From the NCBI GenBank assembly GCA_013115145.1, contig JAAPAO010000139.1, forward strand, positions 1 to 64,000: a stretch of DNA of 64,000 bases, in the 5' to 3' direction. The DNA is from Perkinsus chesapeaki ATCC PRA-425 (taxonomy: Eukaryota; Protista; Perkinsozoa). Made by a program: the position numbers and the translations under genes. The notes under the pieces were generated by a model. That model was not told the DNA's origin. It saw only the letters and a program-made list of their open reading frames with translations, and ran no database searches. Positions 4,956-28,781 of the stretch are shown piece by piece. The stretch's first letter is position 1. Each line of letters begins with the position of its first letter.

Positions 4956-6509
4956 TTAACGAACTGAACACATATGGTTTGGAAGTAAGTATACGTCACC
5001 GTGTGGTACCACACTTACAGTCACTCCATTCACATGCTTTATTAGCCATATACCTAGTACCAATACAACAACTATTACATAACACAATAACCTTACAATC
5101 TGCCACCTATATAGCTGTTCATAGCGTAGGTAGTACAGAAGCATCCAACGCATACTTGTCCAGGTCGACATACAGTCTTACTGTCCGGGCATTGGACCTC
5201 CTTAGTCTGACGGTTTGCTATTCACCAACTGTTGTGGTATATAACTAACCTCTCCTATGGCTATTTGTGCAAGGCGTCGTCGGTGAGAATCGGCATACTG
5301 CAGTCTATCGTACCACATAAAGGGGTCGTATCTGGTAGTAAAGTGACAAGCGAGATCTCGAAACTGCCAACCTTTTGCCGGTTTGTCTATTGGTCTCTGC
5401 ACGGTGAGGGTCATTAAGGTCCCCCCATCTTCCCGATCTCTCAAAGGCATTTCTCTCTCTTATAGCCTCATTGTCGGCCTGCTAACAGTTCCCTCTAGAA
5501 TCCTTATTTGAATGGTCACACCTCAGCTTGCCAATCTCTAGACACATGAAAGGTTGAAAGCTCCTCTGTGGTGGATAACTGTCTTACGCACATGGCTACG
5601 GTGAATACAGCTAGTCGGTGGCATATCGGCATATGGCAATATAGAGAGGGATTTACCCTACACTGATACACAACTAGCATAGGTCTGGAGGAGACGATAG
5701 GGAGGTGTAACATGGACCATTAACTACTTCAACATATTATTTGATTATTGCTGTAGGTCGCTGTTGAGCTGTCGCCCTTCCTCATCCTTGTAGCACTATG
5801 ACTTCTATTACGTATTAAGGATTATGCTGATAGCACTTATCAATATATTGAGGCATTCAGCTTGCCTCCGCTTGTGATACCTCGGAGCAGGACGATACCC
5901 ATGGTGTTGGGTGTAGTAGATTGACGAACACAACAATGACGATGATGAGCGCCTCCCCTGACAGTGGTGTAATAGACCGCGTGAGTCTGTTATTAATTGC
6001 ATGTGTAGTTTACTATAATGGACAGAAAACGTGTTCACTGAACAATGTTAAGGAAGGCAAAGTCATCGTTCACCATTTCATGATGAGGATTGACCAGTCC
6101 GGGTCTTCTTGGGACTTCCTTGGACTGTGGGCTTGCATTCAAGTAGCACCGATTTGTACGTTATATCGACACTTGGTGGATCAACCTATGAAGGCACAGC
6201 AGCAATGGAACAGCAACAAGAGTCACTGTCTTACAACTTGCCAGTCTGCAGTGCTAACCTGAGGGTCATACTGCCCGGTTTGGTGTACCACCCATTCTTT
6301 AATAAGCGGATCCTCGGTATCTTTCTGAGGTCGCTTGGAGACACCTCCGTACTTGGATACCCAGAATCTAAGGTCGATGCTAGGACTTCACCCTAGAGAG
6401 CTGATTACCGATTGTGACCATGTGATACCCAAGGTCGAGATGATATTGTTATAGGAGGGGCAGTGGACTGCGTGGTAGTAGTTACAGACTGGTTATCAGT
6501 TGGTGCCAT
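4956..6509 (-). CDS. Hypothetical multi-exon protein, divergent from the acetyl-CoA transporter; 3' end uncertain
   Basis: ATG at 6509 (MAPTDNQSVTTTTQS) followed by GT-AG-bounded open exons (RFWVSKYGGVSKRPQKDTEDPLIKEWVVHQTGQYDPQ; QRPIDKPAKGWQFRDLACHFTTRYDPFMWYDRL). No family recognised. Confidence 0.45.
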
Positions 6510-6786
6510 GTATGGCGTCAATTCCAAAAAAACTAGAAGACCGATTTACTGTTTGCCCATAACGCTGCCGAGGCTGGGTCAGACAGTCTAATCTGTATTG
6601 GAAGTGCCCTATGTCATTGCTACCATGCATTCGAACTTCATAACCAGCGCCGGCCTTCGACGCATGAAAAACACAGTAAGTTTGGTAGAATCTTGCAACT
6701 CTTGCAACTCCTCAACGAAGTTTAATTGTTAGCGGAGCGACGCAGCCATATGAGCATTTTTAAAGTTAAGTAGCGCATTAGTGGGT

Positions 6787-9048
6787 ATGGCCGACTCTGA
6801 TAAAGGTAGACCAGTTAGGAGGGCTGCTGCTGCCTCTAAGAAGATGAATAATAATGTAGATGATCTAGAGTATCCACACAAGGCATCCCAACCACCAGTC
6901 TCTGGTGAAAGTAATGCGTTGACGCTGGGTAAGGTGAACTACTGGTAGGTACCATGTCATCCAGTAGTGAGGAGGAGAATGGGCCACAAAGCGAGGGCCT
7001 TAAAAAGGACTTTGGCAGCATTGTATGGTTATTAGTGCTGTACGTATTAATATGATGACAAGCAGCCTATACTAGCCTTATATGATAGATACACACTACA
7101 GGGCATTCCCATGGGCATGTCCGGAGTTTTCCCGCTACTATTAAAGGAACAAGGGGCTACGTAAGAAGAAGCCATACATGTGGTATAGGACTGGATCAAC
7201 GTTTCAGCTACTCTGAGCTGGCTCTGTTTTCTATGTGTTCGTGGCCATTCTCATTGAAGATTTTCTGGGCACCTATAGTCGATACGGTATACGTTAGGGC
7301 ATGGGGACGTCGGAAGACATGGCTGGTAGAACTGCAAGCCGGGGTACTGGTGCTCGTCGCAGGCCCCATTCAGGTGCCATGTCAACTGCTGATCGCTGGG
7401 GTACTGTACTACCTTTCGAGGCACTATGCTGCTTGGCTTCACGATAATGACGTCACACCACTATTTATGTGTTTTCTAATACTGTAATCTCCATTAGAAC
7501 ACTCCTCGAGAAGGATTGCAGTACTGTAGGTATTTTTTGGCGGCAACTCAGGACATAGCCGTTGACGGTTGGGCAATTACAATGCTTTCCAAGCAGAATG
7601 TCGGTTATGCCGGTAGGGTCGGCTCCCCATTACACCTTGTAGAGTGCTATCCTAACAGGCACTACCAACTCGGTGGGGCAGACAGCGGGTTACTTCCTGT
7701 CGTTCTCTGGCTTCCTTGCCCTTGAAAAGCTGGGTATTGTCAACCTGGAGACATTCATGGCATGGATGGCTCTAATTTTCCTACTTTGTAACTTACCTTA
7801 GCCACATCACTTAGAGCTTTACCAGGCACGATCCTTGTGGCGATCTTCAAGAAGGAGGATGATATTCCTCCCGAAGATGAGCCAGAGTCCCTATCGTATG
7901 TTTACGCTACTATATGGCGTAGGACAGCTCCTGTACATGCCAAGCAACAACGGTTTCAGATATGTGCCAAATGCCCTGCATTCAAGATGTTGTATCCCTC
8001 CTCATGGTAATGACATTGCCCTTCGGCGCAGCTGACTCAGCTGGTCTTAAACTCCAGGAAAGAGGTGTCCCTAAAGACGTAAGGCATTCTATCCTCCTTT
8101 ATGCCAGTATCCATTCTAAGGTCATAGCGCTTTTTGCCACACTGAGCACACCAGCCTACATCCTGTTGCCATGGATCCTCAGTAAATACGCTACATCAGC
8201 CCGGCCATTGGCTATGATGAGAGCTGTGTACCTGCCTAAGGTTATGTTAGGTAGTATAGTGGGAGGCAAAGGGGAGGGAGGTATGAAGGAGGAGCGTTAG
8301 GTGCCGTGTCGATGCTATTGGTGTTCATATGTCCTACCGGGGCATTGACTAGGTAGGTTAATGGTGATTCTAGTGGAAGTTACGGTATGACTTCAGGAGT
8401 AAAACCCATCATGCTCAACCTGGTGATGATGAGGTATCTATGCTATACTATTGCCTATGTTTTGGCCTACTTATAGTACATGCCGCTCTATCACAGGTAA
8501 TACCGCACGTTACTTTATCGTACCATAATTCCTTCAGTGCATTTTTCTGGGTAAGATGTCATTCTTCTCCCAAGTATCGGATACATCCATCGGCGGTACC
8601 TATATGGTAATACCGCTCCTTTCATCTTCTCCTTTCCAACTGCCGCCGTTCCTCAGACATTTTTAAACACTGTCTCCAATATCGGGGGCAATCTAGGCCA
8701 GCAGCTTGGCCTCAGAGGTACGTCTCGATCCTCACTTCGTGGGTTTCCTATTCCAATTTGTAAGCCCTCGACTATCTGGCAATAAGAAGCCCAACAAGTG
8801 GTGAAGTTGTAGTGGACTCCTTTTATGTTACCTGTACCCTCGGTATCATATTTGGCGTTGTATGGTTCAAGTAAGTTATCTTCTCCCTGGTGATGTCTAT
8901 AATGATGCGTGCGCGAAGGTACTATGGTCGCTCTCTCATAAAGCGTATCGAAGGATACAGTGCGACAGACTGGTTGGTACACGGTAGCAGCAGCAGCAAC
9001 CCCGATCAGAAAATGACGGGTAATACGTCAGAGGGCAAGTTGGAGTAA
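6787..9048 (+). CDS. SLC33A1: Acetyl-CoA transporter (SLC33A1/AT-1, AmpG-like MFS)
   Basis: QGIPMG, WPFSLKIFWAPIVDTVY..WGRRKTWLVPCQLL, FLAATQDIAVDGWAITMLSKQNVGYA, SIGGTYMTFLNTVSNIGG. Confidence 0.93.
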
Positions 9049-9622: not shown

Positions 9623-12600
9623 ATGGTATCCACGAATGAGGTGCACGGAGATGATAACAAGGCAGCACAACCGTCATCATCAGCATCAACCAACGAGGGT
9701 CACTCTATCGGCAGCACACCGGGTGCATTGAGCTCTCGTAGCGAGCTACTCAACTTGGTGTCGCAGATAAAGTCAAGGGTTCAGGACAAGCTCAGTAATA
9801 GGCGGTATGATACGATGTTCCGTTGATCGCCTTTCCACCTCAGCTGGTGTGGATTTCCCTATACCGCAGTTCATTCTTATCGGTCGGCAGTCTGTTGGTA
9901 AGAGTCGGCTTGTCGAGGCTCTGGCTGGTGAACAGGTAAGTCCCGTCTAAGTAATGTTTGCATATTGCATTCAGTTCAATTTCGTATCGGGTACATTGGG
10001 ATCAAGGCGGCCAACAGTGCTGGAGTTCCGTAACGACCCGAGCCTAAAGGTGTCCCGCTGGCAAATATTGAATACATCGACACAAGTCTGGGAGGAGAAG
10101 ACCATGCCACAAGTAAGCCACGCTACTGCTGGGCAACTTATCTGCGGTGACTATCAAGCAGGTTTTGAAAATTGTATCTGATGCCCATGAGTCTTTGGGA
10201 GCCTCTGTGTCTCGAGACCCCATATATGTTAGAGTCGAAGGAAGGAACTGTGTAGATATGCAAATAACAGATCTACCTGGATTCCGGTAGGGTTAGAAGG
10301 CCATCTGTGAGCAGCATCAAGATTGCTCAGAGAATTCGCCCTTGATAAAGAGAAGCAGTCCTTGGCCGATCAGATAGATGATTTGGTCAGCTCCTTCATG
10401 CATGATCCTCGTAATGTAATGTTGTGCGTTGAAGAGGTAGTAGCCGGTTTGAGGAGTTGGGTGGCGTTTAGTGTGGTTTGTCTAGGCTGGTGATGCTGCT
10501 AATCTTTCTACCTTGGCTAGATGCAAGAGGGTTGATCCCTACTACAATAGAACAATACTTATCAGGAATAAGCTTGATAAGTAATCACCACCACACTGCT
10601 ATATCGATTACTGTTGCTAATAGGTATTATAGAGATCTTACAGCACAGAACGTTAACGAATGGCTGGGAGGGTAGTAGGCATTGACGCCGCTCTCTTGGT
10701 GGCGTGGAGAGAGGCTTTTGTTAGGTACGGTGATCTCCCTGATAACCTAATAAAGTTCTGTCTCACTTTGCCATTTTGGGATGAAAAGCACGGCGGGCCA
10801 CCTAAGCCCTTCATCCAGCTCAGGTGATGGGCTCTGCCATTTTTACTTAAAGCGCTACGGTGGTTTTTCTGTGGTTTAGGAAGGAGATGAACGATAGAGA
10901 TATCGCTGAAATGAAATCAAAGGGAGCATCCCAGCAGTTTATGCAATACGTCGGTTTTGACAACTTTGCCCGCTTTATGGAGAAGAAGATAGAATCCTTA
11001 TTCACGTACGTAACGGGGACATGGGCAACAGCAGTAGCAGCAGCAGCAGCTCGGTCTGTTTAGTGACTCTATTGGACCATGTCTGCGTAAACTGCAGGAT
11101 CTGGATAAGGAATGGACAGATACAAGGGATTCTAACAAACAGATGTTACAGGATACCGATCCTAATACGGTGGTCAACTCCAGTAAGAATAACAACAGCA
11201 ACACAGTCCTGTGAAGTATTTGCAATTGTCAGTTCGTGCAGCTGGACGGTCCTTTGCTGAGGCTTTGAATCATGTTATGGAAGGAACAATACGATCAGAG
11301 GTAGATCGGCGGTAATGTACTCAGCTGGTCTCCAAGCGTGGAGGAGGCGCCCCGCTATTCCATCCGTAACTTGCTATTGCTTCCTATGTAGGTCAATCGA
11401 CTAACTCTTGCTGATGAACTGTATGAGTTTCAGCAATGGGTGCAATTGCAGGACTTTAGCCAGGACTTCCCTCTCCTACCAACAGATGTACGCATCATCT
11501 CCATCACACCTCATACCATCTTCCCTTAGGATTTCTCCAGTCTTGACCAGTACATAGAGTACCTCGAAACCGATTGCAAGGTGATGATGATCTGCTGCAT
11601 TCCTACTCTCAGGACTGTCGTCATGACTATCCACAGGTCCCCTCCTACGACCAGCCTTTGAACGGCGGTGCCCAGTTCAAGCGGCTCAAGTTTGAATGCG
11701 AAGTTTTCTTCCGTTTTTCGGACATATGTATTGATGTAGGCTCTTTGGTGATAATATTATTGTTATTATCTCATATAGGTATCCAAACGTGATGTCATCC
11801 AAGCTAGAGGTGTCAGCGTCAGTCAAGTACGTGGGGGTGCAGCCAATAGTAACAGCCAGTAGAGTTATCGTAGGTTTCATGGCAAGATGTTATATTGAAG
11901 CTTTTGGCTAAGGAAGGACAAGAAAATGTTCGAGCTAAGATTGCTTATGTTGGTAGACGGATTGAATGGTTTTTCTTAAAGCAAAAAGAGGTAAGGCGAA
12001 ACTGTGGCGTGAGCCAGTATACTCGGGTTAGGTTGTGATTGAATTTATGGACAATTTGAAGGGCTCATGTGATGAGCATCTTTACTCTCAACTATTCTCG
12101 AAGAGAGTTCGGCTCATCAAGGACAACGAGACCTGCCGTGAGCTCATATACCAGTAGGAAGATAAACATTGAAGGCTGGTATCTACATTATATAGGAAAT
12201 ATGATGAGAAGCTCGAACATCAGTACAAGCTATTCTCACAGCTATTCTCGAATACATTGCAATCGACCTTCGCAAATCCTTGGGCACTTGTAAAGGTAAG
12301 ATTTCGCCATTCCGAAATCGTCGGAGCGATTCTTGTTAGGCGTCATCGTGGCAGCTGGATCTCACTGATGACGGTTTTGAGGATATGTGTTTACCTTCGT
12401 TTGATGACACTAAGGCGAGAATTCCAATTGAGATCGAGTGGAGGTCTAGAATGGAGCGAAAACTAAGGAAGAGATTAAATGCGATACCAACTGATCCAGT
12501 GAGGCTCGGAATCGATGTGGATTCGGAAGTGCTCATTTTTTATTTTCTAGCTGATGATCGATGAAGCAGTTGAGAAGATTCAAACCTTGATGATGATAAC

Positions 12601-12975
12601 TTTCATCAACATCAGGAATTGCCTTTGCGATCAGTTGGAGCTATTCGCCGATAGCTTCTTCCAGTTGCCAATGGCAAGGCATCTCCAAGGAGAGATGAGT
12701 ACCATACAACTTCGACCCGAGGTAACAGCTACCGCTCCGGTTCAGGGATGCATTGATGTGTACTCAGGATCGTGCTCCCTTCATGGCCCGAAGAAAGGAT
12801 GTGCAACATGATCTCGATAGATCTGAGGCCATGTTGGAAGATATCGAATGGTGTATCGATCAGGTAGGAACGAGTGATTTATTTTCTCTGGTAATACGGC
12901 ATACTTCAGATTCACACCTTTGCCTCGACAACCAAGGCACGGCAAGGGCCAATGGACTGGAAGAAGAACTACTAA
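9623..12975 (+). CDS. Dynamin-related GTPase, DRP5/ARC5/apicomplexan DrpC-like, many exons
   Basis: G1 GRQSVGKS followed by RLVEALAGEQFNFVSGTLGSRRP; G3 DLPG; G4 NKLD; last exon IHTFASTTKARQGPMDWKKNY*. Confidence 0.85.
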
Positions 12976-13311
12976 ATACCAGAGTAAGAGTGGTACATCA
13001 TATAATGGTTTGATTGCATTTTGGTTTAGGTGCTAACAACAACTTGGGGAGCCGCTGTGTTATTGATTATCCCCATGTGTTTAGGCGTTCCGATAACTAC
13101 TGCTATTATCACATAAATGTGATGATGTTCCTCGACCTTTAACAGTTGTTCATTTAACATATTTGCAAAGTTTCCTATTTTCAACTTGTATTGAGTTTTC
13201 ATACTTCAAGTTCGTCGCACAACATACACCCCATTACCTAATCCGAATTCATTAACAAACTCAATTCGACAATAACCTTGAATGATACTCCTTGCAAAAA
13301 CTAAAAGGCTC

Positions 13312-14497
13312 TCATATGTCTACTAGCGGCTGCTCCTTGGCAACTGCACGAAACTGCTCGGCTAGATTACATAGATTTCGCCGAGCAAATGAATATGCCT
13401 TATACGACCTTCTGGGCCGTCCGGAGCCATCCGCGCTCAAACCTAATAAGACGTATCACGCACAAGGAAAAGCACGAGGGGCTTTACCAGGGACAGTCTG
13501 CCGGAAGAATGGAGGGGGTATTAAACTGGCAGGATCGACATCGACCTCGATATCTCCCTCACCGTCTGAGATCGTACGGCTAGTGTTTGTAAGGTATTTA
13601 CTGTTATTACCACTTTCAACTCGGCGCCTCATACTGTTAGCGAACGTTCCTATTATCTTCTGCATCTCATCTGTCTTGGTGAAAGGCTCGAAAGGCGTTA
13701 TATCGAGCATAGCATGATTACAATCAAATGATACGCATCCTTCTGAAAACCCTGAGCCGACCGATTAGTGCGAAAAAGCTGAGAGGATCGCTACCTGTTA
13801 TTCCACCATGGACATCAAATGGTGGGTTGCGGTTAAGCAGATCTAAAAGCTTAGAGTTATACCTGATCCCATGGCATAGATTACTAACTGGTTCAACGAG
13901 TGTTACAATGGATGGCTCTCATCAATGTAGAGGAAACCTTGCCAAGCATAGTAGGGCGTTCGACGTAGCCGACACACATAGCCTAATAACGACTAGTACC
14001 GAGAGAAGTTGCCGCTGCTCATGTTACCCGCATGCTCGAAATCGTAAACATCTGGGTGGATAGCTATATCCTCTTCAGTGGCTGGGTAGTTAACAAAATC
14101 ATCCTTCCAAGGCCCAGTGCATTTCGCAACCTATGAGTAAATAAATTATACCTGTTATATGCAAGCGACTATTACGAATGCATCAAACTGGTCCCGCTGG
14201 GGAGTGGTTAATAATTCCACATTGGATTGGTTCCTCAATAAGCTCAATTGTTTCTCTTTAATCATATCGGTGTCCTCCTCTACACCAACAGATGTACCTA
14301 CATTCCCTATATAACCCTACTAACCTCCCAACCCTATAACCTTTACCAGCATGAGGGCAGCTCTTCGGTCGTTTGTTCTCATCACTAGTATTCTCCACTT
14401 CATCATTATCACTGGAACACTCAGGTATCTTGAGTGACACTGCCACTCTATAGGTTGGCTTCTGACGAGACGATGTTGTTGATTCCGATGTACTCAT
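13312..14497 (-). CDS. Uncharacterised protein with a phage/giant-virus-type domain (HP...VHGGIT...FDCxH..D..P...YK...LAEQ), multi-exon
   Basis: Splicing canonical GT-AG introns joins GYVCRLRRTPYYAWQGFLYIDESHPLYNSKLLDLLNRNPPFDVHGGITGFSEGCVSFDCNHAMLDITP ... SYKAYSFARRNLCNLAEQFRAVAKEQPLVDI*. The first introns are approximate. Confidence 0.75.
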
Positions 14498-14568
14498 GGG
14501 GATTAAAATAAAAAGTCTACCAAATACACTTAACGACGAAGTAGCCGACTAACCAGACAGGATAGGTT

Positions 14569-15627
14569 TCAAAGAAAAGGATGATACATAACAAGCCTAC
14601 TACTAAGACTAGCGAGGCCACTTGAGCTCATGCGTCGGTAACAGCACCGATAAATATTACCACAACCATCACAGGCTGCAACGACATCCAAATGTCTTTC
14701 CGCTGTGTCAAAGTCAGGCCCTTTACGTTGGAGTAGGTAGTCGCAAATGTGATGGCGGCCGGAATCCCTGCCACTCCTGATGATCATCAAGTTACTTCCA
14801 TTTATCCTCCACTTCAACAGTCCATCCGTCCATCGATGACACAACATATGGCATGATCGGAACGAAGGAAATGCATCATCGTTGATTCTAGTAACTCTCG
14901 TGACACGATAAGATGTATTATCTCGGTAACATACGTCAATCGACCGCTGACCTCGGACAGGGAACAGTTCTAGAATCTTGCGTCTATTCCAGAAATACGG
15001 GCCCTTCCCTTGTTTAGGATGTGGCGAGGAAAAAGCATAAGACCAGGCTGGTAGAGCTTTTAGCGTGTCAAGATTATGATCCAGACGTAAAAAACGAAGC
15101 TCACAATAAGCATTTGGTCTAACGAAAGCAACATAAACGCATTCGCCGACGAGAGCCATCTTAATATTGAAGTGATCTTGTTGAGGCTCCACGGGAATAA
15201 AATAGACTTTCCACGTTTTAACGAGGCTCATATGTCGAAGGTCAAAGATTTTCAATTCCGCGGAGCCTTCCTCACCAGCCAGGATTGCTAGACGGCTCGT
15301 TAATTTATCATGGCAAAAAGCATGGCCAACGACGCCCAGTTCCAAAGCGATATCATCGAGAGCGTCAGCCGCTGTCCTGAGCATTTGACGGAGATACCAA
15401 CCTTGGCGACCCTTATTGATATCATAAACCTTTCGAGCATTTACCAGCAGAGGCTGTAGACTGGAGTCGTACAGGATAAGCTCCTCTTTGGGGCAGTCCA
15501 AAGACAAGGTGGGAATGCCTATGAACCCAATAATTGCTTGCTTCACAGAGTTCGGTATGTCAACGCTGTAGGACCTTTCCTCCACGGAACGGAAGTACAC
15601 TGCAAGGACGCTACGAGGCTCTATCAT
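14569..15627 (-). CDS. Intronless lineage-specific protein with N-terminal F-box-like motif (copy A)
   Basis: Uninterrupted ORF of about 350 codons; first ATG at 15627 (MIEPRSVLAVYFRSVEERSYSVDIPNSVKQAIIGFIG); the F-box-like call rests on pattern only. Confidence 0.65.
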   Translation of the reverse strand: MIEPRSVLAVYFRSVEERSYSVDIPNSVKQAIIGFIGIPTLSLDCPKEELILYDSSLQPLLVNARKVYDINKGRQGWYLRQMLRTAADALDDIALELGVVGHAFCHDKLTSRLAILAGEEGSAELKIFDLRHMSLVKTWKVYFIPVEPQQDHFNIKMALVGECVYVAFVRPNAYCELRFLRLDHNLDTLKALPAWSYAFSSPHPKQGKGPYFWNRRKILELFPVRGQRSIDVCYRDNTSYRVTRVTRINDDAFPSFRSCHMLCHRWTDGLLKWRINGSNLMIIRSGRDSGRHHICDYLLQRKGPDFDTAERHLDVVAACDGCGNIYRCCYRRMSSSGLASLSSRLVMYHPFL

Positions 15628-15806
15628 TACCAAAACTTCATGGAACACCACAAGGGAGCTAGTGATCAAATCAACGACCGTTCAAACGCGTGAGCCGAGT
15701 AAACGATGGAAAAATGCTAATTTTGCTATCTCGGAATGAACGGCTAATAAAGTGAATATGCCCACCCACTCACCCAAAGAAGAATTTCCGCTGGTTCATC
15801 CTTAAC

Positions 15807-16911
15807 TCAAGAGTAATACGGATTTATCCTATAGGACATAACAGTGCTGATCAATGTAATTCTCTCCCATATATCAGATATCCTCGACCTGCCACTTGAG
15901 TTTATAAAGCGAGCTCTCCCCTGTGTACCGCGTTGACAGACCGTACAGTTACCGTAGTAATCTACCAACATTTGATCGAACCATCTAGGACACATGGCAT
16001 TTAGCGTCAACATCCATGGATCAGTGAAGAATGATCGGCAGGATTGCGGAAGGTCTCTCCGGCCGTATGTTCGGACTAGGCGTATATGAGAGTTCGTAAT
16101 ACTGGATACCTCAATAATTTCTTGGAGCGGAATGTGCCCTTTCGAGTCTCTGGTGCTCTTTGAAATCTCCTTAAACAGGACATAAGGCATAGACATCGAC
16201 ACTTTCTCTAGGCGAACGAGCGTCCAGGTGTTATCGGATAAGCTGCGAACCTCTACAGCGATCTTTCGAAGATCTCCGCTCTCGTAGGGATCTATGGCGA
16301 AACTTCCAGGCAGTACGCAATCATTACTATGCCAAATTGAACGCGAATAGGTTGCTCCCTGGCCCTCTTCCAGCACTGCAACTAGTACCTCTGAGCCCAC
16401 CCCAGATTGTATACCAACGATCATATGATTATCAATTACCAGCATGCCTTCAATATGGGTATCACTGCACCAGAGGGTCATAAGACCTGCCGTGCACCAG
16501 ACACCAACCTTTTTATTATTCGTCAAATCATACATTAGAATCCTGCAGTCCCAACCAGGGTGGCCGGTACTTAGACAATAGAAGAGAGTAAGGCGGTCAC
16601 GGTGTGGGTCATAATAGACTTGCGCGGGATCTTCTATGCGTACTTGCATAGGGTCGATTACCATAGGGATTGAGGGTGACAGTAGAGTGTTCAAAGTCAT
16701 TCCCTTTTCGCCCTTACAAACCCCTTTTAATACTCCACGGTGGAGGAATATAAAACTTGGGGAACAATTAAGTTCTATTTTATCACCGTATAAGACTAAG
16801 CTAGCCTTGTGACCGACGAACTCGGAGATCTCTCCGAGGAGGTCCGAGATGAGTTGATGACGCCCGACACTATTCCTCCACAGTGATATTGGCAACGTAA
16901 ATCAACAACAT
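15807..16911 (-). CDS. Intronless F-box-like protein (copy B); 5' end frameshifted or non-AUG
   Basis: 362-codon ORF opens on TTG at 16895 (QLISDLLGEISEFVG motif). The nearest ATG (16911, MLLIYVANITVEE*) is out of frame but resembles the start of copy A. Confidence 0.6.
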
Positions 16912-17135
16912 ATTGGAGAGATGGAATGTTAAACTCCGTTACTGAAAACTGTTCGATTTCATGCCTTTCAGCCCCAGTCTCATGACCGTTCAAACGAATC
17001 CGCAATTGCGCAGTTCAACGTTTGCGTTGAGGAGTTGTAAGATGATATAAGTGCGCAAGATTGGCTTCGAAGTGCGAAAACAGTTCTTAGTCGATTGCTT
17101 AGCCGTTGGCCGCTTCGATGAAACAGTTAGCCCTT

Positions 17136-18718
17136 ATGACTAAACTGCCACATAGTGATGATAACCAGTCTACCCTCTCACCGGGCAGTAGGTTCTGGTT
17201 GAATAACTCGGTTACCAAGAGTAAGAGACTGCCCAAACCTTACATTGATGTCAATTATCGTAGACACTAAATCGACATGTCGTTCAATATCAGTAGCTTA
17301 CAGCGAGTGCGTGAAGAACTCTGAAGCCCAGGTTGTCGTGAACAAAGGTGGCTTGACTTATGCACGCTGGAGCATCGATACAACCTTAGCACTTGGCCCG
17401 ATACCACTGGAAGCCTCTAGACAGGAGCGATTGCTGTCATGCTCGAAATCAATTCATAGAAGTATGGGCCCGGCAATATCTCGACTGGACTACTCTAGTG
17501 AGATGGAAAATAGCAAGCTTATGAGCAACGTCATCGGAGTATCTCCGTCAAAGTCCACAACGTTCGGAGTTCGCCCTACCTTCCGTAAGAACAGCTACAC
17601 TAGCATTTAAGAGAAGCATCTACTAGGGGAGGCTGACATCATCAGTGCTGCGGTACAGAAATACAGCGAAGTTAGTCTAGCTCTCGGCAATCGAGCCCTA
17701 CCTACACCACATATTAACTTCGATGAAGCAGCATTCATGAAGTAAAGACAAGACCCGGCCTCCGTTTGATAAACCAAAAAGGCAGGTACTTCAAACGCGT
17801 ACGGTCAACAGGTAATTATAAGGCTTCAGTGGAGGAGCGTGAGCTGCGAGGCCAAAGGAGCCCTACTAGAACGGCTGAGAGACCCGAAGTTAAGAGCCCG
17901 TGCTTGGTACCCAATGGAGATCATTTAAGATTTGTAGTCCCTAGCACTAGGTTGCTCCCCTTCCACCCATCTCCTGTTCTGTTTCGGTGGCTACTGAGAC
18001 AGCATCCTACGAGGACGTACTGCTTTGCACTGACAGGGTTGACAAGGCCACTTCCCCCATTCGTTGGGCAACAACTGGGAATAGCAAGACCCAAGATACT
18101 TACACCAAGACACCGGCTACAACTGTAACAGAACACAGAAGCTCGGAACAGAAGGGAACGTTGAAACCTGCCCGTAAAGCAAAGGCTGTGACCAACGAAA
18201 CCGTGGAGCGCCCTTCACAAGGCTCGATCGCAGCGGCCCCTACCGTGGCGGTCATAGGCGTCGATCAAACTCTGACCCCTGTACGCAGCACAAGTGCCCT
18301 CGAATCAGGCAACGTACGAACACCGTCACCTCGGTCGAAGGGCGAGATAACCTCCGACAACAAACAGGACACTCCTGGAAACAGCAGATTGGTAGCAGAA
18401 CATGAAGGGACGTCACTTATTGATAATCAAGTGAGCTTTCGCGACTCCCTTGCTTCTCTCCCTCTTGTTCCTTATCAGACACCGAAAAGCGCACAATCCA
18501 GTTCCCCTCCAGCACCTTTGGGAGAAGTTCAAAAACTGGTTGTGTCGGTGTTGGAGAAGTACATCAAGGAACAGCCCAATACCAATTCTGGTGATCTGAT
18601 CCAAGAAAAGGATGAGATCATCGTCGAACGCAATCCTCCCGCTGAGCCAGCAGCAGCCGAATCTGCCGGCTCTGCAGACCCCCTGGACGGATTTGACAAG
18701 TGGTTTGGAACTATCTGA
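17136..18718 (+). CDS. Hypothetical Ser/Thr/Pro-rich multi-exon protein
   Basis: ATG at 17136; GT-AG joins link ORF 17245-17610 and the long last exon (acceptor at about 17950), ending DPLDGFDKWFGTI*. Confidence 0.55.
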
Positions 18719-18790
18719 TCGATAATCAATTTCTGAGAGCTGTTCAGATGCTCGAATCAACGCTCAAAAAACGCGCCATCAAAGCGGAAG

Positions 18791-20033
18791 TTGTCATCAA
18801 GGAAGAGATCTGATGCTTCACCTCCTCGAGGGCCCTGGGTATCGACTAGTCAAAATCTGGCACATGCAGATTTGGCGGCTCAAAAAAGGAGAGCAAGCTC
18901 TAGAAAGGAGACTAAAGATGAAAGACAGAAAAGACTGGGTAAAGCAATCATCATAGATAAAAAGATACTCTGCTGCAAGTAGCCCTTGTACATCGTTCGC
19001 CTTCCAAGCCAGTCAAACGGGAACAGAAAAATCCACCCAGTGAGAGCCAGCCTCGATTGAACACCCGCCCCAAACGCGGAATGGAAGGCTGGTAGTTATG
19101 GAGCTCACGCAGCATTATGCCGGTGAAGCATTCCACTGATAAGGTATAGCTGCAGAAGGGCTCGAAGCTTGCTGCGAGAGAGAGCCAAGAAGGAGGCTCT
19201 TTCACAGGCTCGAAAAGAGTCCTATACTGCCTTAGTCAAGCTAGAGTCGGTGGCTAGGCGGCGGGTGGGTGATGGCACGGGGATCCTTACTATGGGTATC
19301 ATGAACGCAGGAGGAACGGCAGCGAAGTCGCGTGCCGAGCCATGTTGTGCAGAAGAGGACTTCTTCTCAGGACGGCCGTGTGACGAGAGCGAAATATACT
19401 CCTGCTCAGGGTAACAGCATCAAGAAGTACTTCTGTGGCTAACTCAAGAGTCTCCCGCAAGGTCCGCGCGAAAAAGATCATACACTACTGCAGAGAACCT
19501 CGACGGCGGATGGTTCCAGTGATAGCCCGCTGCCGCCAACCGGTCTCAGTCTTCGATTGGATGATTTGTCTGCGAGCTTGTCAAGAAGTGCTATATCAAC
19601 TGCACGAACCTCGGTGTCGAGCAGGGAGAGAAGTCGTAGCCGCCAGTGGGTTCTGAGGTCGTTCAATAACGAAGATCCTGATGATGGAGGTGCTGCTACA
19701 ACCCGCCTGTGGGGCAATTTAGCATCGCAAGATACACCCTCCACGCCACATCGCTTGAATAACACTGATAAAGAAGTCATTCGAAGTTGGCCACGAGAAT
19801 ACTCAGATATGATCATCACGGACAGCCCATTGGAGCCCGAGAGTGCAACTGGCCATGATGGCTATGTTAGACCGCCTTCCCGAGGGGCAGAATCTTGGAT
19901 GCCACTCGGGAACACTGGGTGGACCACTCCAACGGAAGAAGAAAATGGTGGAGGAGTTGATAACTCTGAAATTACAGACATCCAACAGCGACTAGGTCAG
20001 TCGGCCGTCGTGCGATCAGACCTCCTTATATAA
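18791..20033 (+). CDS. Hypothetical low-complexity, charged multi-exon protein; start uncertain
   Basis: Protein-like open segments 18791-18982, 19169-19270 and 19557-20033 separated by plausible GT-AG introns. Confidence 0.4.
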
Positions 20034-20911
20034 CTGATAATCGCCCAGGTGCCTTTCGACCACCTTCGCGTGGAGGCCGTTTCTGGCAGGAATTAGGCAT
20101 ATCTCCTCCGCAACAAGATCAAAGTGCCGAGGAGCAGCAAAATGAGTACCGTTAATCTCGGCTGGTGGTAAATATTTCTTGCATTCCACCCTTTGCCCTT
20201 CCTCAGTATTCCCGAGTTTGGAGATGCTGACACCCCCGAACCTCAGGCAGCTGCTGCAGCAGTTTGCCGTTATGCTGTACTTCATCGCTTAGACCACTAC
20301 TCACTCTTCACTTTTTCGTTAGAAATGCCAAAGCGATACGCCAGCTGAGGTTGGCGCGGTGAGAGACGTCGCGAACGCAAATGAGACTAGTCCTCCCTTG
20401 TGCAGCAAAGGTGACCCATAAGCTCATGTTCACAGTGTGAACATGGTGTGGAAATCACACCAGTGGCTCCACGCAACGCTGTAAAGTTGTCGCAAGATAC
20501 CAGCGGGCTAAACGAATTTGCCAGTACATCCTCCGTAGAGGTCATCGGTTGCGAGAGCATCACTAGCATTGTAGCAACTATCTCTTGTCTGCGTGAGCGG
20601 TCTCTCAATAGGATGTCGATATTTCACCTTCTGCCGCTGAGCCATTACTCGCCCATACAGCGAATAGCGAGTCCTTCTCATGCATTCACTGTTCTTATCC
20701 GGACGAGAGTAGGGATGGTGCGAGGAGCCTCCAGGAAGGAGGAGATGAGAGGAACGATACAGTAAACGTCCTTGTTATCACTCAAGGTGTGGCGAAGCAC
20801 CCTACTGCAGATACAGTCGGTCGACAGCTCCCTCATCTCATTACATCGCAGCCTCACTCCGGCTATCAACGAGCTAATATCGGAGTTCTTGGCCGAACGG
20901 GAATGAGTCAT
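20016..20911 (-). pseudogene. Possible degenerate F-box-like or other hypothetical gene
   Basis: N-terminal segment VLRHTLSDNKDVYCIVPLISSFL resembles copies A and B but stops at 20678; downstream frames are broken; a protein-like segment lies at 20016-20285. Confidence 0.25.
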
Positions 20912-22435
20912 CGATAATCCAATTAATTAAAAGTGACCATTTCCTGCATATAGTGTTGGCTGATGTAATTTCTCTGTTCGCGTTGTGAGTTGAATTCAGT
21001 TCATTGTGAGCTCTGTGCCAAGTCTTCCTTGTCTCGATAGGCTATCGACGCCTGCCACGCAATGAGTTCGCTCAATAGGCACCTGCCACCTGAATAAACA
21101 ACAGGACATTGTCCAGGTAGGTACCTCAATTGACGCCGTCTATTCCACAAAAGTGCTGTTGGATTATCCAACTTGGATATAAGTCATTCGTTGGCGCCCA
21201 CTACTATTCTCCCCTGGAATGATCGTTGTATTTCTGCTATTTTCATGATCTAAATATAGTGCTGGTCCCTACGTTAGCTAAAGCCAGATTAGGTCGTTAC
21301 AGGAAGAGCCCCACAAGTAAGAATCTCGCTTCCGCCCATCTTGTTCGTACACGACACGAGATAGCGAACATGTTAATACATACAGGTTCTGCAAGCTACA
21401 TTTGCTGATACGGCCTGTTAAACGCTAGAGCAGTGTTTGTGCATAATAGAGCGAACTTGCTGCATCCACAAACCGGAAATTTTCGCGAATGTCTCGGGCG
21501 AGCTTGTGCAATCAAATCAAGAAAAGGTAGGAAATCGAATCAGCGCATGCCTGAATCACGACTGCCGTGGTTACTGTGCAAGTTAGGACCGAAGTCTCTA
21601 GTTAGGGCAAGTTTCAGACCACGATCCTCTCACAAAGCGCAGCATGCCATCGAAGAGCTCCGTAGACGAGTAGATAGGATACTACGTGCTCGTCTGGCGT
21701 ACAGAGATCGCGATCTCGATCCCCGCGTAAACCGAAATAAATAACGAGCATACAAATTACGATCTTCGAGGCAGCGGAGCCGTCCAGAGGATCTTTCCCT
21801 ATAAGCGGCGCCCTTACAACGCCAAATACGGCCAAAAGTTCCGTGTGTAATAATCAACGACGAAATATTCCAATGCCCTGATGTCATACACCAAGGGAAA
21901 GTAGATGGGTGATGCCACGGACACCGAGGTGCCTCGGGCCGTGAGCGAATGTAGCTCAGATGGACAAAAAGGTGGGCTAATTGGCTAAGGAACAATGTTG
22001 TTGATTTGTCGTCACAGTGAGTCTTCTAGAATACAAGCGGTCGAATCGGTTCGATCAACATAGCCAAAGAAGCACACAATATACTGTAGAATTGACCCAG
22101 TAGCTGGATACCAGTTAGCATTGCTAACTTAAAAACTGCAGTAAGAGAGTCCAGGGGCTTGATTTGACTGCAGCGACGGGGTGTACTGATTACTTTTGTG
22201 ACCAGCAACTCCTGTCTATGTGTATCCGGCACCGCAGATGTCATTGGCCTTCATAAATGACCTCGCATTAATATATCAGTCTAGTGCCACTGGTACTGTA
22301 CCAGGATCGAGTGTCGAAGCGAAAATCCGAAACCATCGGAAACTACCGCTTTTTTCATACAAGAGAGTACCTTGATCATTGGTCAGTCGTGCATCGTTAA
22401 GAGCGCCACGATCTGGCCGATCGTCCGTGGCGCAT

Positions 22436-22505
22436 GGGACAGGTTCCCTGTCACATACCATGACGGGCCGTTAGGAAAAACAGATTGTGACAGGAAACCT
22501 GTCCC
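22436..22505. promoter_or_regulatory. 20-bp inverted repeat whose arms each contain the palindrome GACAGG-N3-CCTGTC
   Basis: GGGACAGGTTCCCTGTCACA (22436-22455), 30-nt spacer, TGTGACAGGAAACCTGTCCC (22486-22505), 1 mismatch; 71 nt upstream of the GNAT-1 ATG. Regulatory role is inferred. Confidence 0.6.
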
Positions 22506-22576
22506 GAAAGTAGAAACATGGGCCGAGTGCATGGCTCGCTTTTTATGGAGCTACCCAGGCTTTCTCGTAAACCCGA

Positions 22577-23955
22577 ATGAACCTCAAAGTGAATCTCCCC
22601 ATCTTGATCCTTGTCCTTGCTGGCTGTGTCAAAGGAGATATATCATTACTATACCACCCTGCCTGGTTATCCGATTATAAGCTACGCCGCCTCCCGAATG
22701 ATGAGATAAACTACAGAGATTATGAAGTTGGTGACACGATGGACGGTGAACCCCTACTCAACTGTGATCCTCCCGACAATATCTGCTACGTGGCCGTGAA
22801 TAGCACTGTGAGTCCTAAGGTAGGTTATAAGCGGTTAATAGCTGAGCTGCCTATTGTCCTTTTACGTCGGTGATCTTCATCACTGCGACTCGATTTCAGA
22901 CAGTTGTCGGCGTTGCTAAAATGAAAATTCCATACCCTTTCGTAGACCCTAAAGTAGCGAAGTTGATCAGAGATAAACTGTAATAACACCTGTTCTCGTA
23001 TGTCGTGATATTCTGCCTATTAGGCCACCTGCAAAGAAAAACGACAAGATTGGTTACCTAGTTTATGTAAGCTTATAGCGGGTAAAATGCGGTGAATACT
23101 TAAATACTCTAGGTTTTAGTCAACTTTTCATCACCCATGTTCCTCTGAAAATCACCTCGTAAAGTTCAGCAAGGCCGTGAGTCGGTCACCGTATTGCTGA
23201 GGCGCCGCCAGTTTGGTGACTTCTACTCCGCATCTAAGGCTATCAGATTTCATGTGACCGAATGCCTTGCATCCAGCCTCGAATTATCCGAGTCGGATAG
23301 TACAGAGCTATGTAGCCTACAATTAGCATCTGCCTTGTCTAGATGAGATAACGGAGCTTTCTGTCTTCTCGATAATGAAGACTTGTGTGAATTGCTGGGT
23401 TTAACAAAAGGTCGAGGAAGTCGATCTAGTCGAAGGAAGGCTGTTAACCACTAGAAGATGTTCAACAGATGCACTGCATCTGTTGCCTCACCCATGCTGA
23501 TCTTCATCCGTCGGACTGCGACATACACGTACGATTATCGTCTCGCCCAAAAATCTCTATAACTTTATATTATCGAGTTACTACGAGCCATTGGCCTTGC
23601 TGGGATTGCCAGTACTCTCAGGTAGGCGTTTCTCCAGGCTCGAGGCGCAGAGGAATAGCGAGTGAACTCATAAACAGGAAGTTCGATATCGTAAGTTGCA
23701 AGGATGTTGCATCATACTGTTACTCTATGCATATATCGAGTGAATAATACTACTTTTGGTTTAGATACGCCAAACGATGCCCAAGGTAGCTGCTATTTAC
23801 CTAGTGGTGCAAAGTACAGATCAAGGTGCCATTACGCTTTATGAAAAAAATGGGTTCGAAACACTCATATCTTCAAGTAGGTCAACCCCACATACACTGG
23901 GCAGGCTTCACTTTTATCAGAGGTATGGACAACCATGGTGCGCTATCTCCTCTAG
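22577..23955 (+). CDS. Signal-peptide-bearing GNAT acetyltransferase, paralog 1
   Basis: MNLKVNLPILILVLAGCVKG leader; spliced ICYVAVNSTTVVGVAKM, GYLVYVGVSPGSRRRGIASELI (motif A) and IYLVVQSTDQGAITLYEKNGF (motif B); ends MVRYLL*. Confidence 0.85.
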
Positions 23956-25134
23956 GATGGCATGCTTTGCTCCTAGACTCGTAATTAGGCGAGCCTAGCG
24001 GGCGCTAACTACTTCATACTAAGCCCTAGAGCAAGGGTGCTGCTCTGACCTTTTAATATGTACTTACCAACCCTATCATAGCGAGTCTATTTCCACTTAA
24101 AAGGGAGATGTTGAGTTATATACGATATACATCAAGGAGTGAATACAGCACACAGCGGGCTTCCGAACAACGCAACATGCATCAACAGCGTCAACCATAC
24201 TAGAGAACTTCTAGGATCTTTCGTGTGTCACCGAGTCGGAGAAAATCAACGGTATCTCGGAGGAAGCGGTTAAGCCATCAGTCGTAGTAGATCGCAGGGC
24301 AGGAGCAAAGCGAGTCTCACCCATTGATCATGGGAGCCAGGACCTAAATTACAGCTACTCCCTACTAAAACTGAGTGCGAGGCATGAGGGGCAGGAGAAT
24401 CGGCCACGTGGTCATTGTTTGCTCGTGCATGTACAGATGCCATCGGCATCATGCCAAGCGGCACAAATACTGCGGCCTAGCACGACCTTCGCCCAATTTG
24501 TGCGGCACAACTGTCTCCCAAATATTCATTTCCATGGAGCCATGAGCATGAGCTTCTGAGGCGCTAACGCAGCGGCTGTGCTAAGAACACGACGTGAGAG
24601 TCACATGGTACAATGCTTCACGCTGTAGTTTTGTAAATATAGTTCGCTATCCTTGATGGGCAGTCAGCCAATAGGGCTTGCGCGGATGCAGAAGACGTCG
24701 TGCCGACGGCGCCACGTTGTGGGCAATGTCCCGCGGAAGGTTTACAGAGGTTTACGGCTCATTACTTCATCGTTTTCACCGCGCAGTGGTAACCTATCTA
24801 TAAATCCATACTCGCTATGCTTCACTCGGTTTTTCAGCCAGGCATATTATTTATTGAACCATTCTGCTAGTCCTCCTCGAGGGGTCGTGATCCATGCGCA
24901 TGCGTGTAGGTCACTCCAGGCACGAATGCTCGGCTCCATGGTCGATTCTTCATGAAGCTCCAGACAGTGGTACCGAAGCGCACCATCCGTGGTATTCTGG
25001 ATAGTCTCGCCGCATCCGAGCGAAACTGTTGAGTTGACGAGCCGTATTTATTATCTTGCTTTACGTCGATCACTGGCTAACTTCTGGGGCGGGAGGTCAG
25101 CTTTCTATTCAGTTACACAAGCGTATTGCTCTCC

Positions 25135-26214
25135 ATGAAGCTGTTCTTTGGCTTTCTGTCCGTGGTACTTGTGGGAGGTGTAAAGATCGCCTACCGGAAC
25201 TATAAGAAAGGTGACTCTTGTGATGACCCAATATTCAAGGCTGTGTGTCCGAAGAAGCAAGGCATCCCCTGTTATGTAGCCGTTAACCTCGATGTGAAGC
25301 GCAATGTAAGATCACGTGAGGCGTCAGCAGGACATTCGAGCTCGCCAGCAAGGCTGGCCTCGTCATTTCACCATTGAAGTCGCTACTTCAGAACGTCCTG
25401 GGATACATAATCATGGACATACCTGCCAGACTATCTCATGAGGAAGAAGCAGCCGTGAGATCCAAGATGTAGGGAGGTTAGAATGTTATGAATGCCGAAT
25501 TCTGCTGCATCGTACATTCACTATTAGCGTCAGGTCAAATCCTAAGAAGCCGGGAGGCTTTGGTTACATAAAAAACGTAAGTTCCTGATAGTTTTTGGTA
25601 CGAGAAGACTTCTCGGAGGAGTGCTTCGGATGATGATCTGATCATACTGAGATCCTCTAACATTCTCATGACCACTAACATCCTCAGTGAAATCCTCACT
25701 ACTAGTAATTGAATTACTGTAATTCCATATAAAGCTACGCCGTGGATGCCGAGTACACTCGAAAAAATATGCATTTCTGCTTTTCAGGTTGAGGTTTCCG
25801 AGGCATTCCGTGGACAGGGTATCGGGACCCGTCTCATCAAATACAGCATTAAACTAGTGAGTGGAAAAGACTGAGAACCGGGTATTCCTTTGAAGCGTTT
25901 GCATTGAAATTACGTGGGGGCAGTCTGGCAAGAGTACCTCTGGAGAGTACCTGGGGCGACTTACTGGCATCAGTCTACGACCTGCTAGTCAGGCTTTCAC
26001 TTGAGGCCTGCTTCTCAGGGTATTGAAGCAGGGAACATTGTGGCGACGACTCTCCTTGTTGACGCGGAGAACCAGGATGCCATACGGTTATATAAAAGGC
26101 TCGGGTTTATCGAAGTTATCCGTAAGTCGGAGCTCGGAGCTATAACTGTACAGGCTAGCTGAAGCCATCTTTTCAGATGATATATCGGATATATTCATGG
26201 CCTTTTATCTCTAA
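25135..26214 (+). CDS. Signal-peptide-bearing GNAT acetyltransferase, paralog 2
   Basis: MKLFFGFLSVVLVGG leader; PCYVAVN..VLGYII, GYIKNVEVSEAFRGQGIGTRLI, LLVDAENQDAIRLYKRLGF; ends FMAFYL*; intron positions match paralog 1. Confidence 0.85.
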
Positions 26215-27977: not shown

Positions 27978-28781
27978 TTAGTTGGAAGGATGAAGAATAA
28001 CCGTGCCGACGGCGAAAGTAGTGAACGCGTCTGGCAGAGTTGCTGTTGACCTCGGTTCGACAGTCGCGGAGGCCACAGTGGTCTTGGTGTCGCTCGTCTT
28101 GGGGATTGCCGTGTCATTTTTAACAGTCAACGACATTGTAGTTGTAGAGCTGATTTGAGGCATACTTGACATTGAAGTCGACTTCTCCCCAGGGCTGAAA
28201 GCCTTATCTCTTGTAGTCGAAGAAGGCTCTCTAGTCTGACGGTTCTCCGTATGCTCAGTTGTGGTCCAAGAACCTCTTCCGGTAGTAACAATTTCGTCAG
28301 AGCTCAAGCTAGAATGATAGGTAGTCACTGTAACCGTGGAGGGCAGTACTGTGGTGTAAGCAGAGCTACTAGTTCTAGTAGAGGGTGTAGCCGATGCTCT
28401 CAGGCTGGATGGTGTAGTTGTGCTCGACACCTGAACCGAGTGGGTTCTGATGCTATCACTGGGATAGGTAGAAACTCCGGGTGGATAAGCGATATTACCG
28501 TCGCAGCCTAGCATTGCTAATACGCGATCATCGCAAGAGGGATCAGCAGCTGGCTGGAAGCAGGGCGTACCATCGGGTCTCAGGTAGATACCGAAGCAGA
28601 TAGGTGGATTTTGCCAATACTTGCAGTAGCTATTGTGTGTTGGTGGGTCACCACTACACTCATGGATAGAGCCACAGGCTCGGGCACAGTTAATATTGAT
28701 ATCAAAGCCAAGGGACAACGCAACGGAAGAGGTACAAGACGCAAGCCACAAAACGACAAGAGTCGCCATCGACATGACCAT
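27978..28781 (-). CDS. Secreted or surface protein: Cys-rich domain plus Ser/Thr mucin-like stalk, intronless
   Basis: Signal peptide MATLVVLWLASCTSSVALS; 8-Cys domain CARAC..EC..DP.THNSYCKYWQNPPICFGIY...CFQP..DPSC..LGC; about 140-aa S/T-rich stalk; short hydrophobic tail. Confidence 0.85.
   Translation of the reverse strand: MVMSMATLVVLWLASCTSSVALSLGFDININCARACGSIHECSGDPPTHNSYCKYWQNPPICFGIYLRPDGTPCFQPAADPSCDDRVLAMLGCDGNIAYPPGVSTYPSDSIRTHSVQVSSTTTPSSLRASATPSTRTSSSAYTTVLPSTVTVTTYHSSLSSDEIVTTGRGSWTTTEHTENRQTREPSSTTRDKAFSPGEKSTSMSSMPQISSTTTMSLTVKNDTAIPKTSDTKTTVASATVEPRSTATLPDAFTTFAVGTVILHPSN

Follow-up and report, generated by a model that had tools for sequence, protein, structure and literature searches.

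A Perkinsus Family of Naa60-like GNAT Proteins with Signal-Peptide-Type Leaders: Candidates for Acetylation inside the Secretory Pathway

Could GNAT enzymes, which depend on acetyl-CoA, be at work inside the secretory pathway of the clam parasite Perkinsus chesapeaki? The question is raised by two neighboring genes, g1 (22577..23955) and g2 (25135..26214), on the forward (+) strand of contig JAAPAO010000139.1 (assembly GCA_013115145.1), of which positions 1 to 64,000 form the window analyzed here. A sequence-only reading of this window had described 22577-26214 as two spliced genes, each with a signal-like leader in front of a GNAT domain, and this description is borne out by gene models, by exact identity of one product with a database protein, and by RNA. 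We hold it to be almost certain that the pair belongs to a real, expressed leader-GNAT family. Our preferred account of that family, which we put forward tentatively and at a little under an even chance, is that of Perkinsus-restricted, tandemly expanded, Naa60-type-related minimal GNATs that a signal peptide has redirected to the secretory pathway.

Two spliced and expressed genes encoding leader-GNAT proteins

Gene models were built from GT..AG introns and reading frames. The g1 gene comprises six exons (22577-22819, 22900-22979, 23024-23066, 23622-23690, 23765-23876, and 23921-23955), ends in a TAG stop, and encodes a type-1 leader-GNAT protein of 193 amino acids. The g2 gene, also of six exons (25135-25305, 25392-25468, 25534-25576, 25788-25856, 26019-26121, and 26177-26214), encodes a type-2 protein of 166 amino acids. 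GT..AG borders are present at every intron of both genes. The g2 translation is exactly that of database protein P0011 (FOL47_001591), with coordinates that agree with the GenBank record, and the acceptor of its intron 2 is placed at 25534 by the family consensus, the start of an RNA contig, and the identity with P0011. The g1 gene is missing from the GenBank annotation, which leaves a gap without a called gene at 20906-25135 of JAAPAO010000139.1. The two proteins are as divergent as the sequence-only reading had supposed (34% identity over 156 amino acids, BLASTP E=2e-15). That reading had also named three shared intron positions; in the protein alignment, all five coincide, and the intron phases are 0,2,0,0,1 in each gene.

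Transcription was assessed in four small 454 runs (X1-X4) labelled marine metagenome/metatranscriptome, of unspecified growth state. The libraries are labelled RT-PCR (reverse transcription polymerase chain reaction), and spliced-leader priming is possible. Their contigs match the models, confirming with single-base precision introns 1-4 of g1 and introns 3-4 of g2; the g2 contig begins at 25534, the start of exon 3. RNA coverage stops short of g1 intron 5 and of the 5′ end of g2, and g1 intron 5 was placed from its GT..AG borders, the reading frame, and the family alignment. In three of the runs, the g1 contigs align from 22557 onward and carry in front of this position 19-20 letters, (T)CCGTAGCCATTTTGGCTCA, without a match in the window. 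Joined to the genomic AG at 22557-22558, this stretch gives the 22-nucleotide dinoflagellate/Perkinsus spliced leader, which is also carried by Perkinsus expressed sequence tags (PMC2868825). The trans-splicing acceptor of the g1 mRNA is this AG (22557..22558, +), which follows a pyrimidine-rich tract 19 nucleotides ahead of the ATG (22538-22576). The 5′ untranslated region is thus 18 nucleotides long. Because 22559-22576 contains no ATG and the first ATG is at 22577, the leader codons of g1 lie in the mRNA behind the first AUG; the transcript does not skip them. A similar CTTTCTATTCAG is seen ∼22 nucleotides ahead of the g2 ATG (25100-25134), outside read coverage. We note that the environmental runs X1-X4 carry g1, with the spliced leader, at ≥99% identity, so that P. 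chesapeaki or a very close relative was present in the sampled marine material. Both g1 and g2 are real, spliced, and expressed.

The acetyl-CoA-binding elements of the domain are present in both products. Motif A, the acetyl-CoA pyrophosphate-binding loop (R/Q-x-x-G-x-G/A), has the core RRRGIA in g1 (23643..23660, +) and RGQGIG in g2 (25809..25826, +). Motif B, helix alpha4 with its conserved Tyr, is DQGAITLYEKNGF in g1 (23819..23857, +) and NQDAIRLYKRLGF in g2 (26070..26108, +). The exons that carry motifs A and B in either gene match Pfam Acetyltransf_1 at profile positions 65-86 and 94-116, respectively; the g1 exon pieces alone score under the Pfam cut-off, though at the right profile positions. 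The g1 product was judged from these exon pieces, from local alignments, and from the P. olseni orthologue P0020 as a stand-in, and its motif B is supported additionally by the alignment of g1 to P0020 and of P0020 to the alpha4 region of human Naa60 (hNaa60). Full-length g2 (P0011) scores 54.1 bits against PF00583 Acetyltransf_1, for which the cut-off is 20.7 (E=2e-14), and a Pfam GNAT match was obtained for 12 of the 12 family members scanned. The complete motifs A and B that had been read from the letters were therefore found in both genes, at the positions originally quoted.

Predicted structures lead to the same assignment. The AlphaFold2 model of g2, computed from a 12-sequence family alignment, has a pLDDT (predicted local distance difference test) of 90.9 and a pTM (predicted template modeling score) of 0.83, and it shows the full GNAT order, beta1-alpha1-beta2-beta3-(inserted helix)-beta4-alpha3-beta5-alpha4-beta6-beta7. 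The model of P0020, the type-1 orthologue, has a pLDDT of 89.0 and the same topology. In both models, the leader lies outside the fold: residues 1-17 of g2 are unstructured and of low confidence, and the first 26 residues of P0020 are unstructured and of low to moderate confidence. Foldseek assigns either model a probability of 1.00 to many solved GNATs, and the non-GNAT fold that would have undone the sequence-only reading is not what these predictions give. In the family alignment, motif A and the alpha4 Tyr are kept in nearly all members, the motif A exceptions being faulty gene models, so cofactor binding is apparently kept. By sequence and model, the domain of g1 and g2 is a complete GNAT fold with intact acetyl-CoA motifs.

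Leaders and predicted topology

In the g1 leader, MNLKVNLPILILVLAGCVKG (22577..22636, +), a basic n-region precedes a core of 12 uncharged residues, the −3/−1 positions hold small residues, and a 23-residue spacer separates the leader from strand beta1. The g2 leader, MKLFFGFLSVVLVGG (25135..25179, +), directly adjoins beta1 (VKIAYRNY) and lies in the low-confidence residues 1-17 of the model. Both conform to one plan, in which 15-20 residues begin with a basic stretch, continue in a core of 12-14 residues without charge, and have small −3/−1 residues. The difference in spacing is general, as type-2 leaders run directly into beta1 (I-x-Y-R-x-Y) and type-1 proteins have a spacer of 10-23 residues. 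Leader sequences diverge in the family alignment; the GNAT core is conserved. Beyond the short N-terminal leader, we found no further hydrophobic or membrane segment in g1 or g2.

Leaders were called by simple rules, as an uncharged run of at least 9 residues that starts by residue 12 and has a 9-residue hydropathy of ≥2.0. Such a leader is present in 16 of the 17 full-length family proteins; among 100 GNATs outside the family that came from the same search, 2 have one. The members that have it show a basic N-terminus and then, inside the first 25 residues, a run of 9-17 residues without charge, and the runs are mostly 10-15 residues, which is the length of a signal peptide and under that of a membrane span. 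The N-terminal flank is more positive than the C-terminal flank in 14 of the 17 proteins, with a tie in two and the reverse in one (P0016); for the most part, this charge balance favors a domain oriented toward the lumen. As far as placement goes, a pair of Cys residues that hardly vary across the family and lie between alpha1 and beta2 is compatible with a disulfide. The g1 protein also has an NST sequon at residue 75. Plastid targeting via a bipartite leader was considered and rejected, as type 2 has no room for a transit peptide and the 10-23 residue spacer of type 1 is not transit-peptide-like. By these sequence features, the leaders are real, family-wide, and of the signal-peptide type. 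They make it probable that the family proteins enter the secretory pathway and point to a likely lumenal or secreted localization.

A Naa60-like family in Perkinsus

Judged by sequence comparison and predicted fold, the nearest relatives of the family are N-terminal acetyltransferases, above all Naa60. Against PDB sequences, the family profile matches Naa30 (9e-12) and AtNAA60 (1.6e-11 over 110 residues), then RimI, archaeal Ard1, Naa50, and Naa10; in a phmmer search of the same sequences with P0020, the five best matches are all hNaa60, the best with E=3.5e-5. Foldseek places hNaa60 (5icv) first for the P0020 model and returns archaeal Ard1, AtNAA60, and Naa30 for the g2 model, with TM (template modeling) scores of 0.6-0.68. 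Among Swiss-Prot models of the AlphaFold database (AFDB), the best fold matches to g2 are MCC1, then Naa30 and archaeal N-terminal acetyltransferases, and in the Atlas, a Naa60 cluster matches its structure best (TM 0.77). tRNA-acetylating toxins and small-molecule acetyltransferases also occur among the fold matches with similar TM, so that the substrate is not fixed by the fold alone. An ESM Atlas feature search with g1 exon 1 returned weak bacterial hypothetical proteins only.

Comparison with Naa60/NatF structures (human 5icv/5hh0 and Arabidopsis 6tgx) reveals what is shared. Naa60 carries an insertion of ∼20 residues between beta3 and beta4 (PMC4993997), and the family has one that aligns with that of hNaa60 and AtNAA60, formed in g2 by a helix at 73-81 and a loop to 90 and in P0020 by a helix at 79-88. 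Motif A and the alpha4 Tyr are conserved in the family and in Naa60. The beta4 Tyr of hNaa60 (Tyr97, AYIL) corresponds to the GY(I/L) Tyr that g1, g2, and the majority of the family possess; Tyr97 and His138 are both essential in hNaa60, and mutation of His138 abolishes activity (PMC4993997). The family is thus Naa60-like in sequence but fails two defining Naa60 features, His138, to which we return below, and the C-terminal membrane helix. The family proteins stop with their final beta-strand and lack the amphipathic helix of hNaa60 residues 182-216 that serves in Golgi binding. Naa60 acts on the cytosolic face, whereas the family, with its signal-type leader at the N-terminus, is predicted to be lumenal, and it differs further in being Perkinsus-restricted and multi-copy.

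An exon-1 profile searched against 1.84 billion representative proteins recovered seven true relatives, all from P. chesapeaki; its best match, P0001, is a bacterial repeat protein and was discarded as spurious. Full-length profile searches added further P. chesapeaki members and the P. olseni proteins P0020, P0021, P0127, and P0128, and the matches ranked beneath the Perkinsus proteins are bacterial RimI-like proteins that cover the query only partly. In total, the family occupies at least 20 loci in P. chesapeaki, counting g1, a 225-amino-acid gene at locus L003, and fused models, and 2-3 loci in P. olseni. Protein searches did not find it outside Perkinsus, which does not by itself prove its absence from dinoflagellates. 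Annotated members are labelled only hypothetical or N-acetyltransferase domain-containing, and a literature search for a Perkinsus acetyltransferase with a signal peptide returned nothing relevant and turned up no proteomic data.

The maximum-likelihood tree has a 99/99 split between type 1, which contains the P. olseni proteins along with g1 and P0005, and type 2, whose 15 rows, g2 included, are all from P. chesapeaki. As g1 and g2 are members of the two deepest clades, the pair is not a recent duplicate, and a recent tandem duplication was rejected on this ground. In P. olseni, the type-1 gene is divided into six exons in the same way as g1 and g2, so the structure is older than the split of the two species. 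A recent bacterial origin was likewise rejected, given five introns common to both types and to P. olseni.

Tandem arrays were confirmed at locus L003 only (contig JAAPAO010000098.1), where a same-strand (+) trio of family genes is found at 7372-8306, 10001-11628, and 14421-15585, the first of them annotated as a 225-amino-acid protein over 5051-8385. Several annotated models are faulty (P0002, P0003, P0005, and P0013-P0017): P0002 and P0003 each fuse two neighboring copies, P0014, P0015, and P0017 are without the first exon, and P0005 is without motif A. P0006 is out of frame at its 3′ end. With such models, the true family size and the number of intact copies are underestimated. Three longer AFDB-cluster proteins also contain the domain, at 26-32% identity: A0A7J6M2K6 (386 amino acids), A0A7J6UNE6 (436 amino acids), and A0A7J6QN37 (564 amino acids). 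They share a UniProt accession series with Perkinsus proteins, one is auto-named Naa60, and they could represent fused models, a third branch of the family, or canonical Naa60. At 12162-19151 of locus L002, the type-1 gene of P. olseni is followed downstream by five small genes (121-178 amino acids) with no Pfam match and no similarity to the GNAT family, which may be another small-protein array.

Within the window, tblastn with the whole family as query found no copies beyond g1 and g2. Two intronless open reading frames at 14.5-16.9 kilobases (kb) had been candidate paralogues of the pair and were rejected when a similarity search came back empty. Two other leader-bearing proteins are encoded near the pair, one at 27978-28781 (−) that is Cys-rich and then Ser/Thr-rich and has no Pfam match, and one at 379-1260 (+) that is a eukaryotic-type carbonic anhydrase (Pfam E=7e-52).

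Site of action, candidate substrates, and meaning

In the account that we prefer, each protein consists of a signal-peptide-type leader and a complete GNAT domain of roughly 150 residues. The leader would take the nascent protein into the endoplasmic reticulum (ER) and would then most likely be cut off, so that the enzyme, presumably soluble, would come to lie in the secretory-pathway lumen or farther out. This enzyme would bind acetyl-CoA via the R/Q-x-x-G-x-G/A loop and pass the acetyl group to an amino group, for which N-termini or lysines of secretory proteins seem the most probable acceptors. If the use of acetyl-CoA is kept, as it appears to be, the proteins act where acetyl-CoA is available; by analogy, the candidate sites are the ER/Golgi lumen and, less likely, the host cytosol. 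We regard lumenal protein acetylation by the family as a serious possibility that nonetheless falls well short of probable. A narrower version, in which the family are soluble, signal-peptide-imported lumenal N-terminal acetyltransferases derived from Naa60 by a signal peptide replacing the C-terminal membrane helices, and would acetylate N-termini made by signal peptidase or other lumenal proteases, is doubtful.

The sequence-only reading had taken as its premise that acetyl-CoA does not freely enter the lumen. That premise is incomplete, as AT-1/SLC33A1-type transporters import acetyl-CoA into the lumen (PMC7820588) and one such gene is present in the window. It is a multi-exon gene at about 6800-8600 (+), 14 kb upstream of g1, and its exon pieces 7233-7487 and 7516-7725 match Pfam PF13000 Acatn (E=4e-14 over 7233-7484 and E=6e-10 over 7516-7722). 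An acetyl-CoA route into the lumen is thus encoded in the genome, and a transporter of this type could supply the family enzymes. A conserved linkage of transporter and family was rejected, because the single P. olseni orthologue locus examined (L002) is free of Acatn genes out to 10 kb. Synteny with P. olseni was rejected as well, with no tblastx match between 12-32 kb of the window and L002. The proximity of the Acatn gene to g1 and g2 is probably coincidental.

A number of observations weigh against the account set out above. The leaders were called by simple rules, the C-terminal flank of g2 is positive (+1), and P0016 and P0019 are equivocal in their charge balance. No KDEL/HDEL tail was found in g1 or g2, and ER residence is hence not expected. 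The equivalent of hNaa60 His138 (beta5) is Val in g1 and Leu in g2 and P0020; the position is variable in type 2, where only a few members have His. N-terminal acetyltransferases have a much longer alpha1-alpha2 segment and beta6-beta7 turn than the family does, so that a tunnel for a peptide N-terminus is not evident, and, taken with the missing His, the short substrate loops make lysine, small-molecule, or glycan substrates possible. The transporter is linked to the family at only one of at least 20 loci, and apicomplexan secretory N-acetylation is reportedly independent of AT1. Finally, the family was not found in Apicomplexa or P. marinus in protein profile searches, whose length window hides longer relatives and which scanned no eukaryotic genome collection.

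Some of these points bear on what the enzymes acetylate. Secretory-pathway enzymes acting on non-protein amines in the lumen, vacuole, or cell wall, such as wall-glycan amino sugars, polyamines, host-derived amines, or antimicrobials, would account for substrate-gating loops that are short or absent and for the loss of the Naa60 catalytic His, and a large, fast-diverging paralogue set (34-54% identity) fits diversified small-molecule specificities. Dopamine and spermidine N-acetyltransferases occur among the fold matches, and NCBIfam matches include spermidine, streptothricin, aminoglycoside, and mycothiol acetyltransferases. However, those NCBIfam matches are all far under their cut-offs, and the best matches in sequence and fold are consistently protein N-terminal acetyltransferases; we consider this explanation unlikely, though it deserves to be kept in view. 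Secreted effectors that reach the cytosol of clam haemocytes and acetylate host proteins with host acetyl-CoA would be expected to carry a leader and no retention signal, as these proteins do, and to show a lineage-specific, tandem, rapidly diverging expansion in a parasite; signal-peptide GNATs are candidate effectors in cyst nematodes (Hg-GLAND1, PMC4828791). Yet P. olseni has a type-1 orthologue of identical exon structure, which agrees at least equally well with a housekeeping role, and RNA from small 454 libraries of unspecified growth state gives no infection-specific expression. Acetyl-CoA is absent outside cells, and we know of no Perkinsus host-translocation motif or mechanism, which leaves the effector explanation fairly improbable.

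The remaining alternatives concern whether the domain reaches the lumen and whether it is active. If the leader were an uncleaved N-terminal membrane anchor that replaces the C-terminal amphipathic helices of Naa60, the domain would sit on the cytosolic ER/Golgi face and act, NatF-like, on cytosol-facing N-termini of membrane proteins. Such an arrangement would match the closest known family, as Naa60 is membrane-associated and cytosol-facing (PMC4993997), would make up for the absent C-terminal membrane-binding region, and, with access to cytosolic acetyl-CoA, would remove the problem of cofactor supply; it also suits g2, P0016, and P0019, in which the C-terminal flank is as positive as the N-terminal flank or more so. 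We think it quite improbable, since most uncharged runs, at 10-15 residues, are too short to span a bilayer, the type-2 runs adjoin beta1 without a linker, the charge balance favors the opposite orientation in 14 of the 17 proteins, and the conserved Cys pair fits an oxidizing compartment. That many of the paralogues have lost catalysis or are decaying, and persist or are tolerated as binding proteins or pseudogenes, is suggested by the annotated P0005 model without motif A, by the truncation of P0016 and several others, and by the loss of the Naa60 catalytic His in most members. But most truncations fall in obviously faulty models (fusions, missing first exons), and g1 and g2, both transcribed and spliced, keep motif A, motif B, the beta4 Tyr, and frames open over six exons, so this is very improbable.

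Several known systems provide context for the lumenal reading that we prefer. In mammals, AT-1/SLC33A1 and the lumenal GNATs ATase1/NAT8B and ATase2/NAT8 make up an established system that acetylates lysines within the ER lumen (PMC8041774, PMC7820588). The Perkinsus proteins resemble ATase1 and ATase2 in belonging to the GNAT superfamily and in having a predicted lumenal catalytic domain that would need imported acetyl-CoA, with an AT-1-type gene in the Perkinsus window, but the mammalian enzymes are membrane proteins of type II and the Perkinsus proteins have a short leader only. NAT8 is absent among the top 30 Swiss-Prot fold matches and the top PDB matches, and the likeness appears to be an analogy of location, with homology only at the superfamily level. 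To our knowledge, nearly all N-terminal acetyltransferases described so far are cytosolic. The cyst nematode gene Hg-GLAND1 shares with the family a eukaryotic parasite as its host genome, spliceosomal introns, and the combination of signal peptide and GNAT domain, but is single-copy and was acquired from actinomycetes (PMC4828791); the Perkinsus family is multi-copy, is closest to eukaryotic/archaeal N-terminal acetyltransferases, and gives no sign of recent bacterial origin.

Closer to Perkinsus, apicomplexan secretory proteins are N-terminally acetylated inside the ER by an enzyme not yet identified, and a signal peptide is missing from all Plasmodium GNATs (PMC10038149). The ER-resident GNAT TgNAT8/Pf3D7_1437000 was discussed as a candidate for secretory N-terminal acetylation and then discounted (PMC10038149). 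By its description, it is like the Perkinsus proteins in being a GNAT of a related myzozoan lineage with a domain predicted in the ER lumen, and it differs in having two predicted transmembrane domains and no signal peptide and in being reported as apicomplexan-specific (PMC10038149). Perkinsus and Apicomplexa both fall within Myzozoa (PMC9550989). This kinship, together with a secretion leader on Naa60-like enzymes, gives lumenal acetylation a concrete candidate, the Perkinsus family, that can be assayed.

As far as sequence comparison indicates, the kind of enzyme is a known one, GNAT/N-terminal acetyltransferase, and what is new here is a signal peptide on a Naa60-like family in Perkinsus. 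Public annotation misses at least one expressed member, g1. The family would illustrate the re-addressing of a cytosol-facing enzyme, and its expansion in one mollusc parasite means that it may bear on host interaction. If the family members were lumenal N-terminal acetyltransferases, they would represent the first case known in molecular terms of the enzyme class that is active in the apicomplexan ER. Proteins inside the secretory pathway of Perkinsus may be acetylated by a family that belongs to this genus only.

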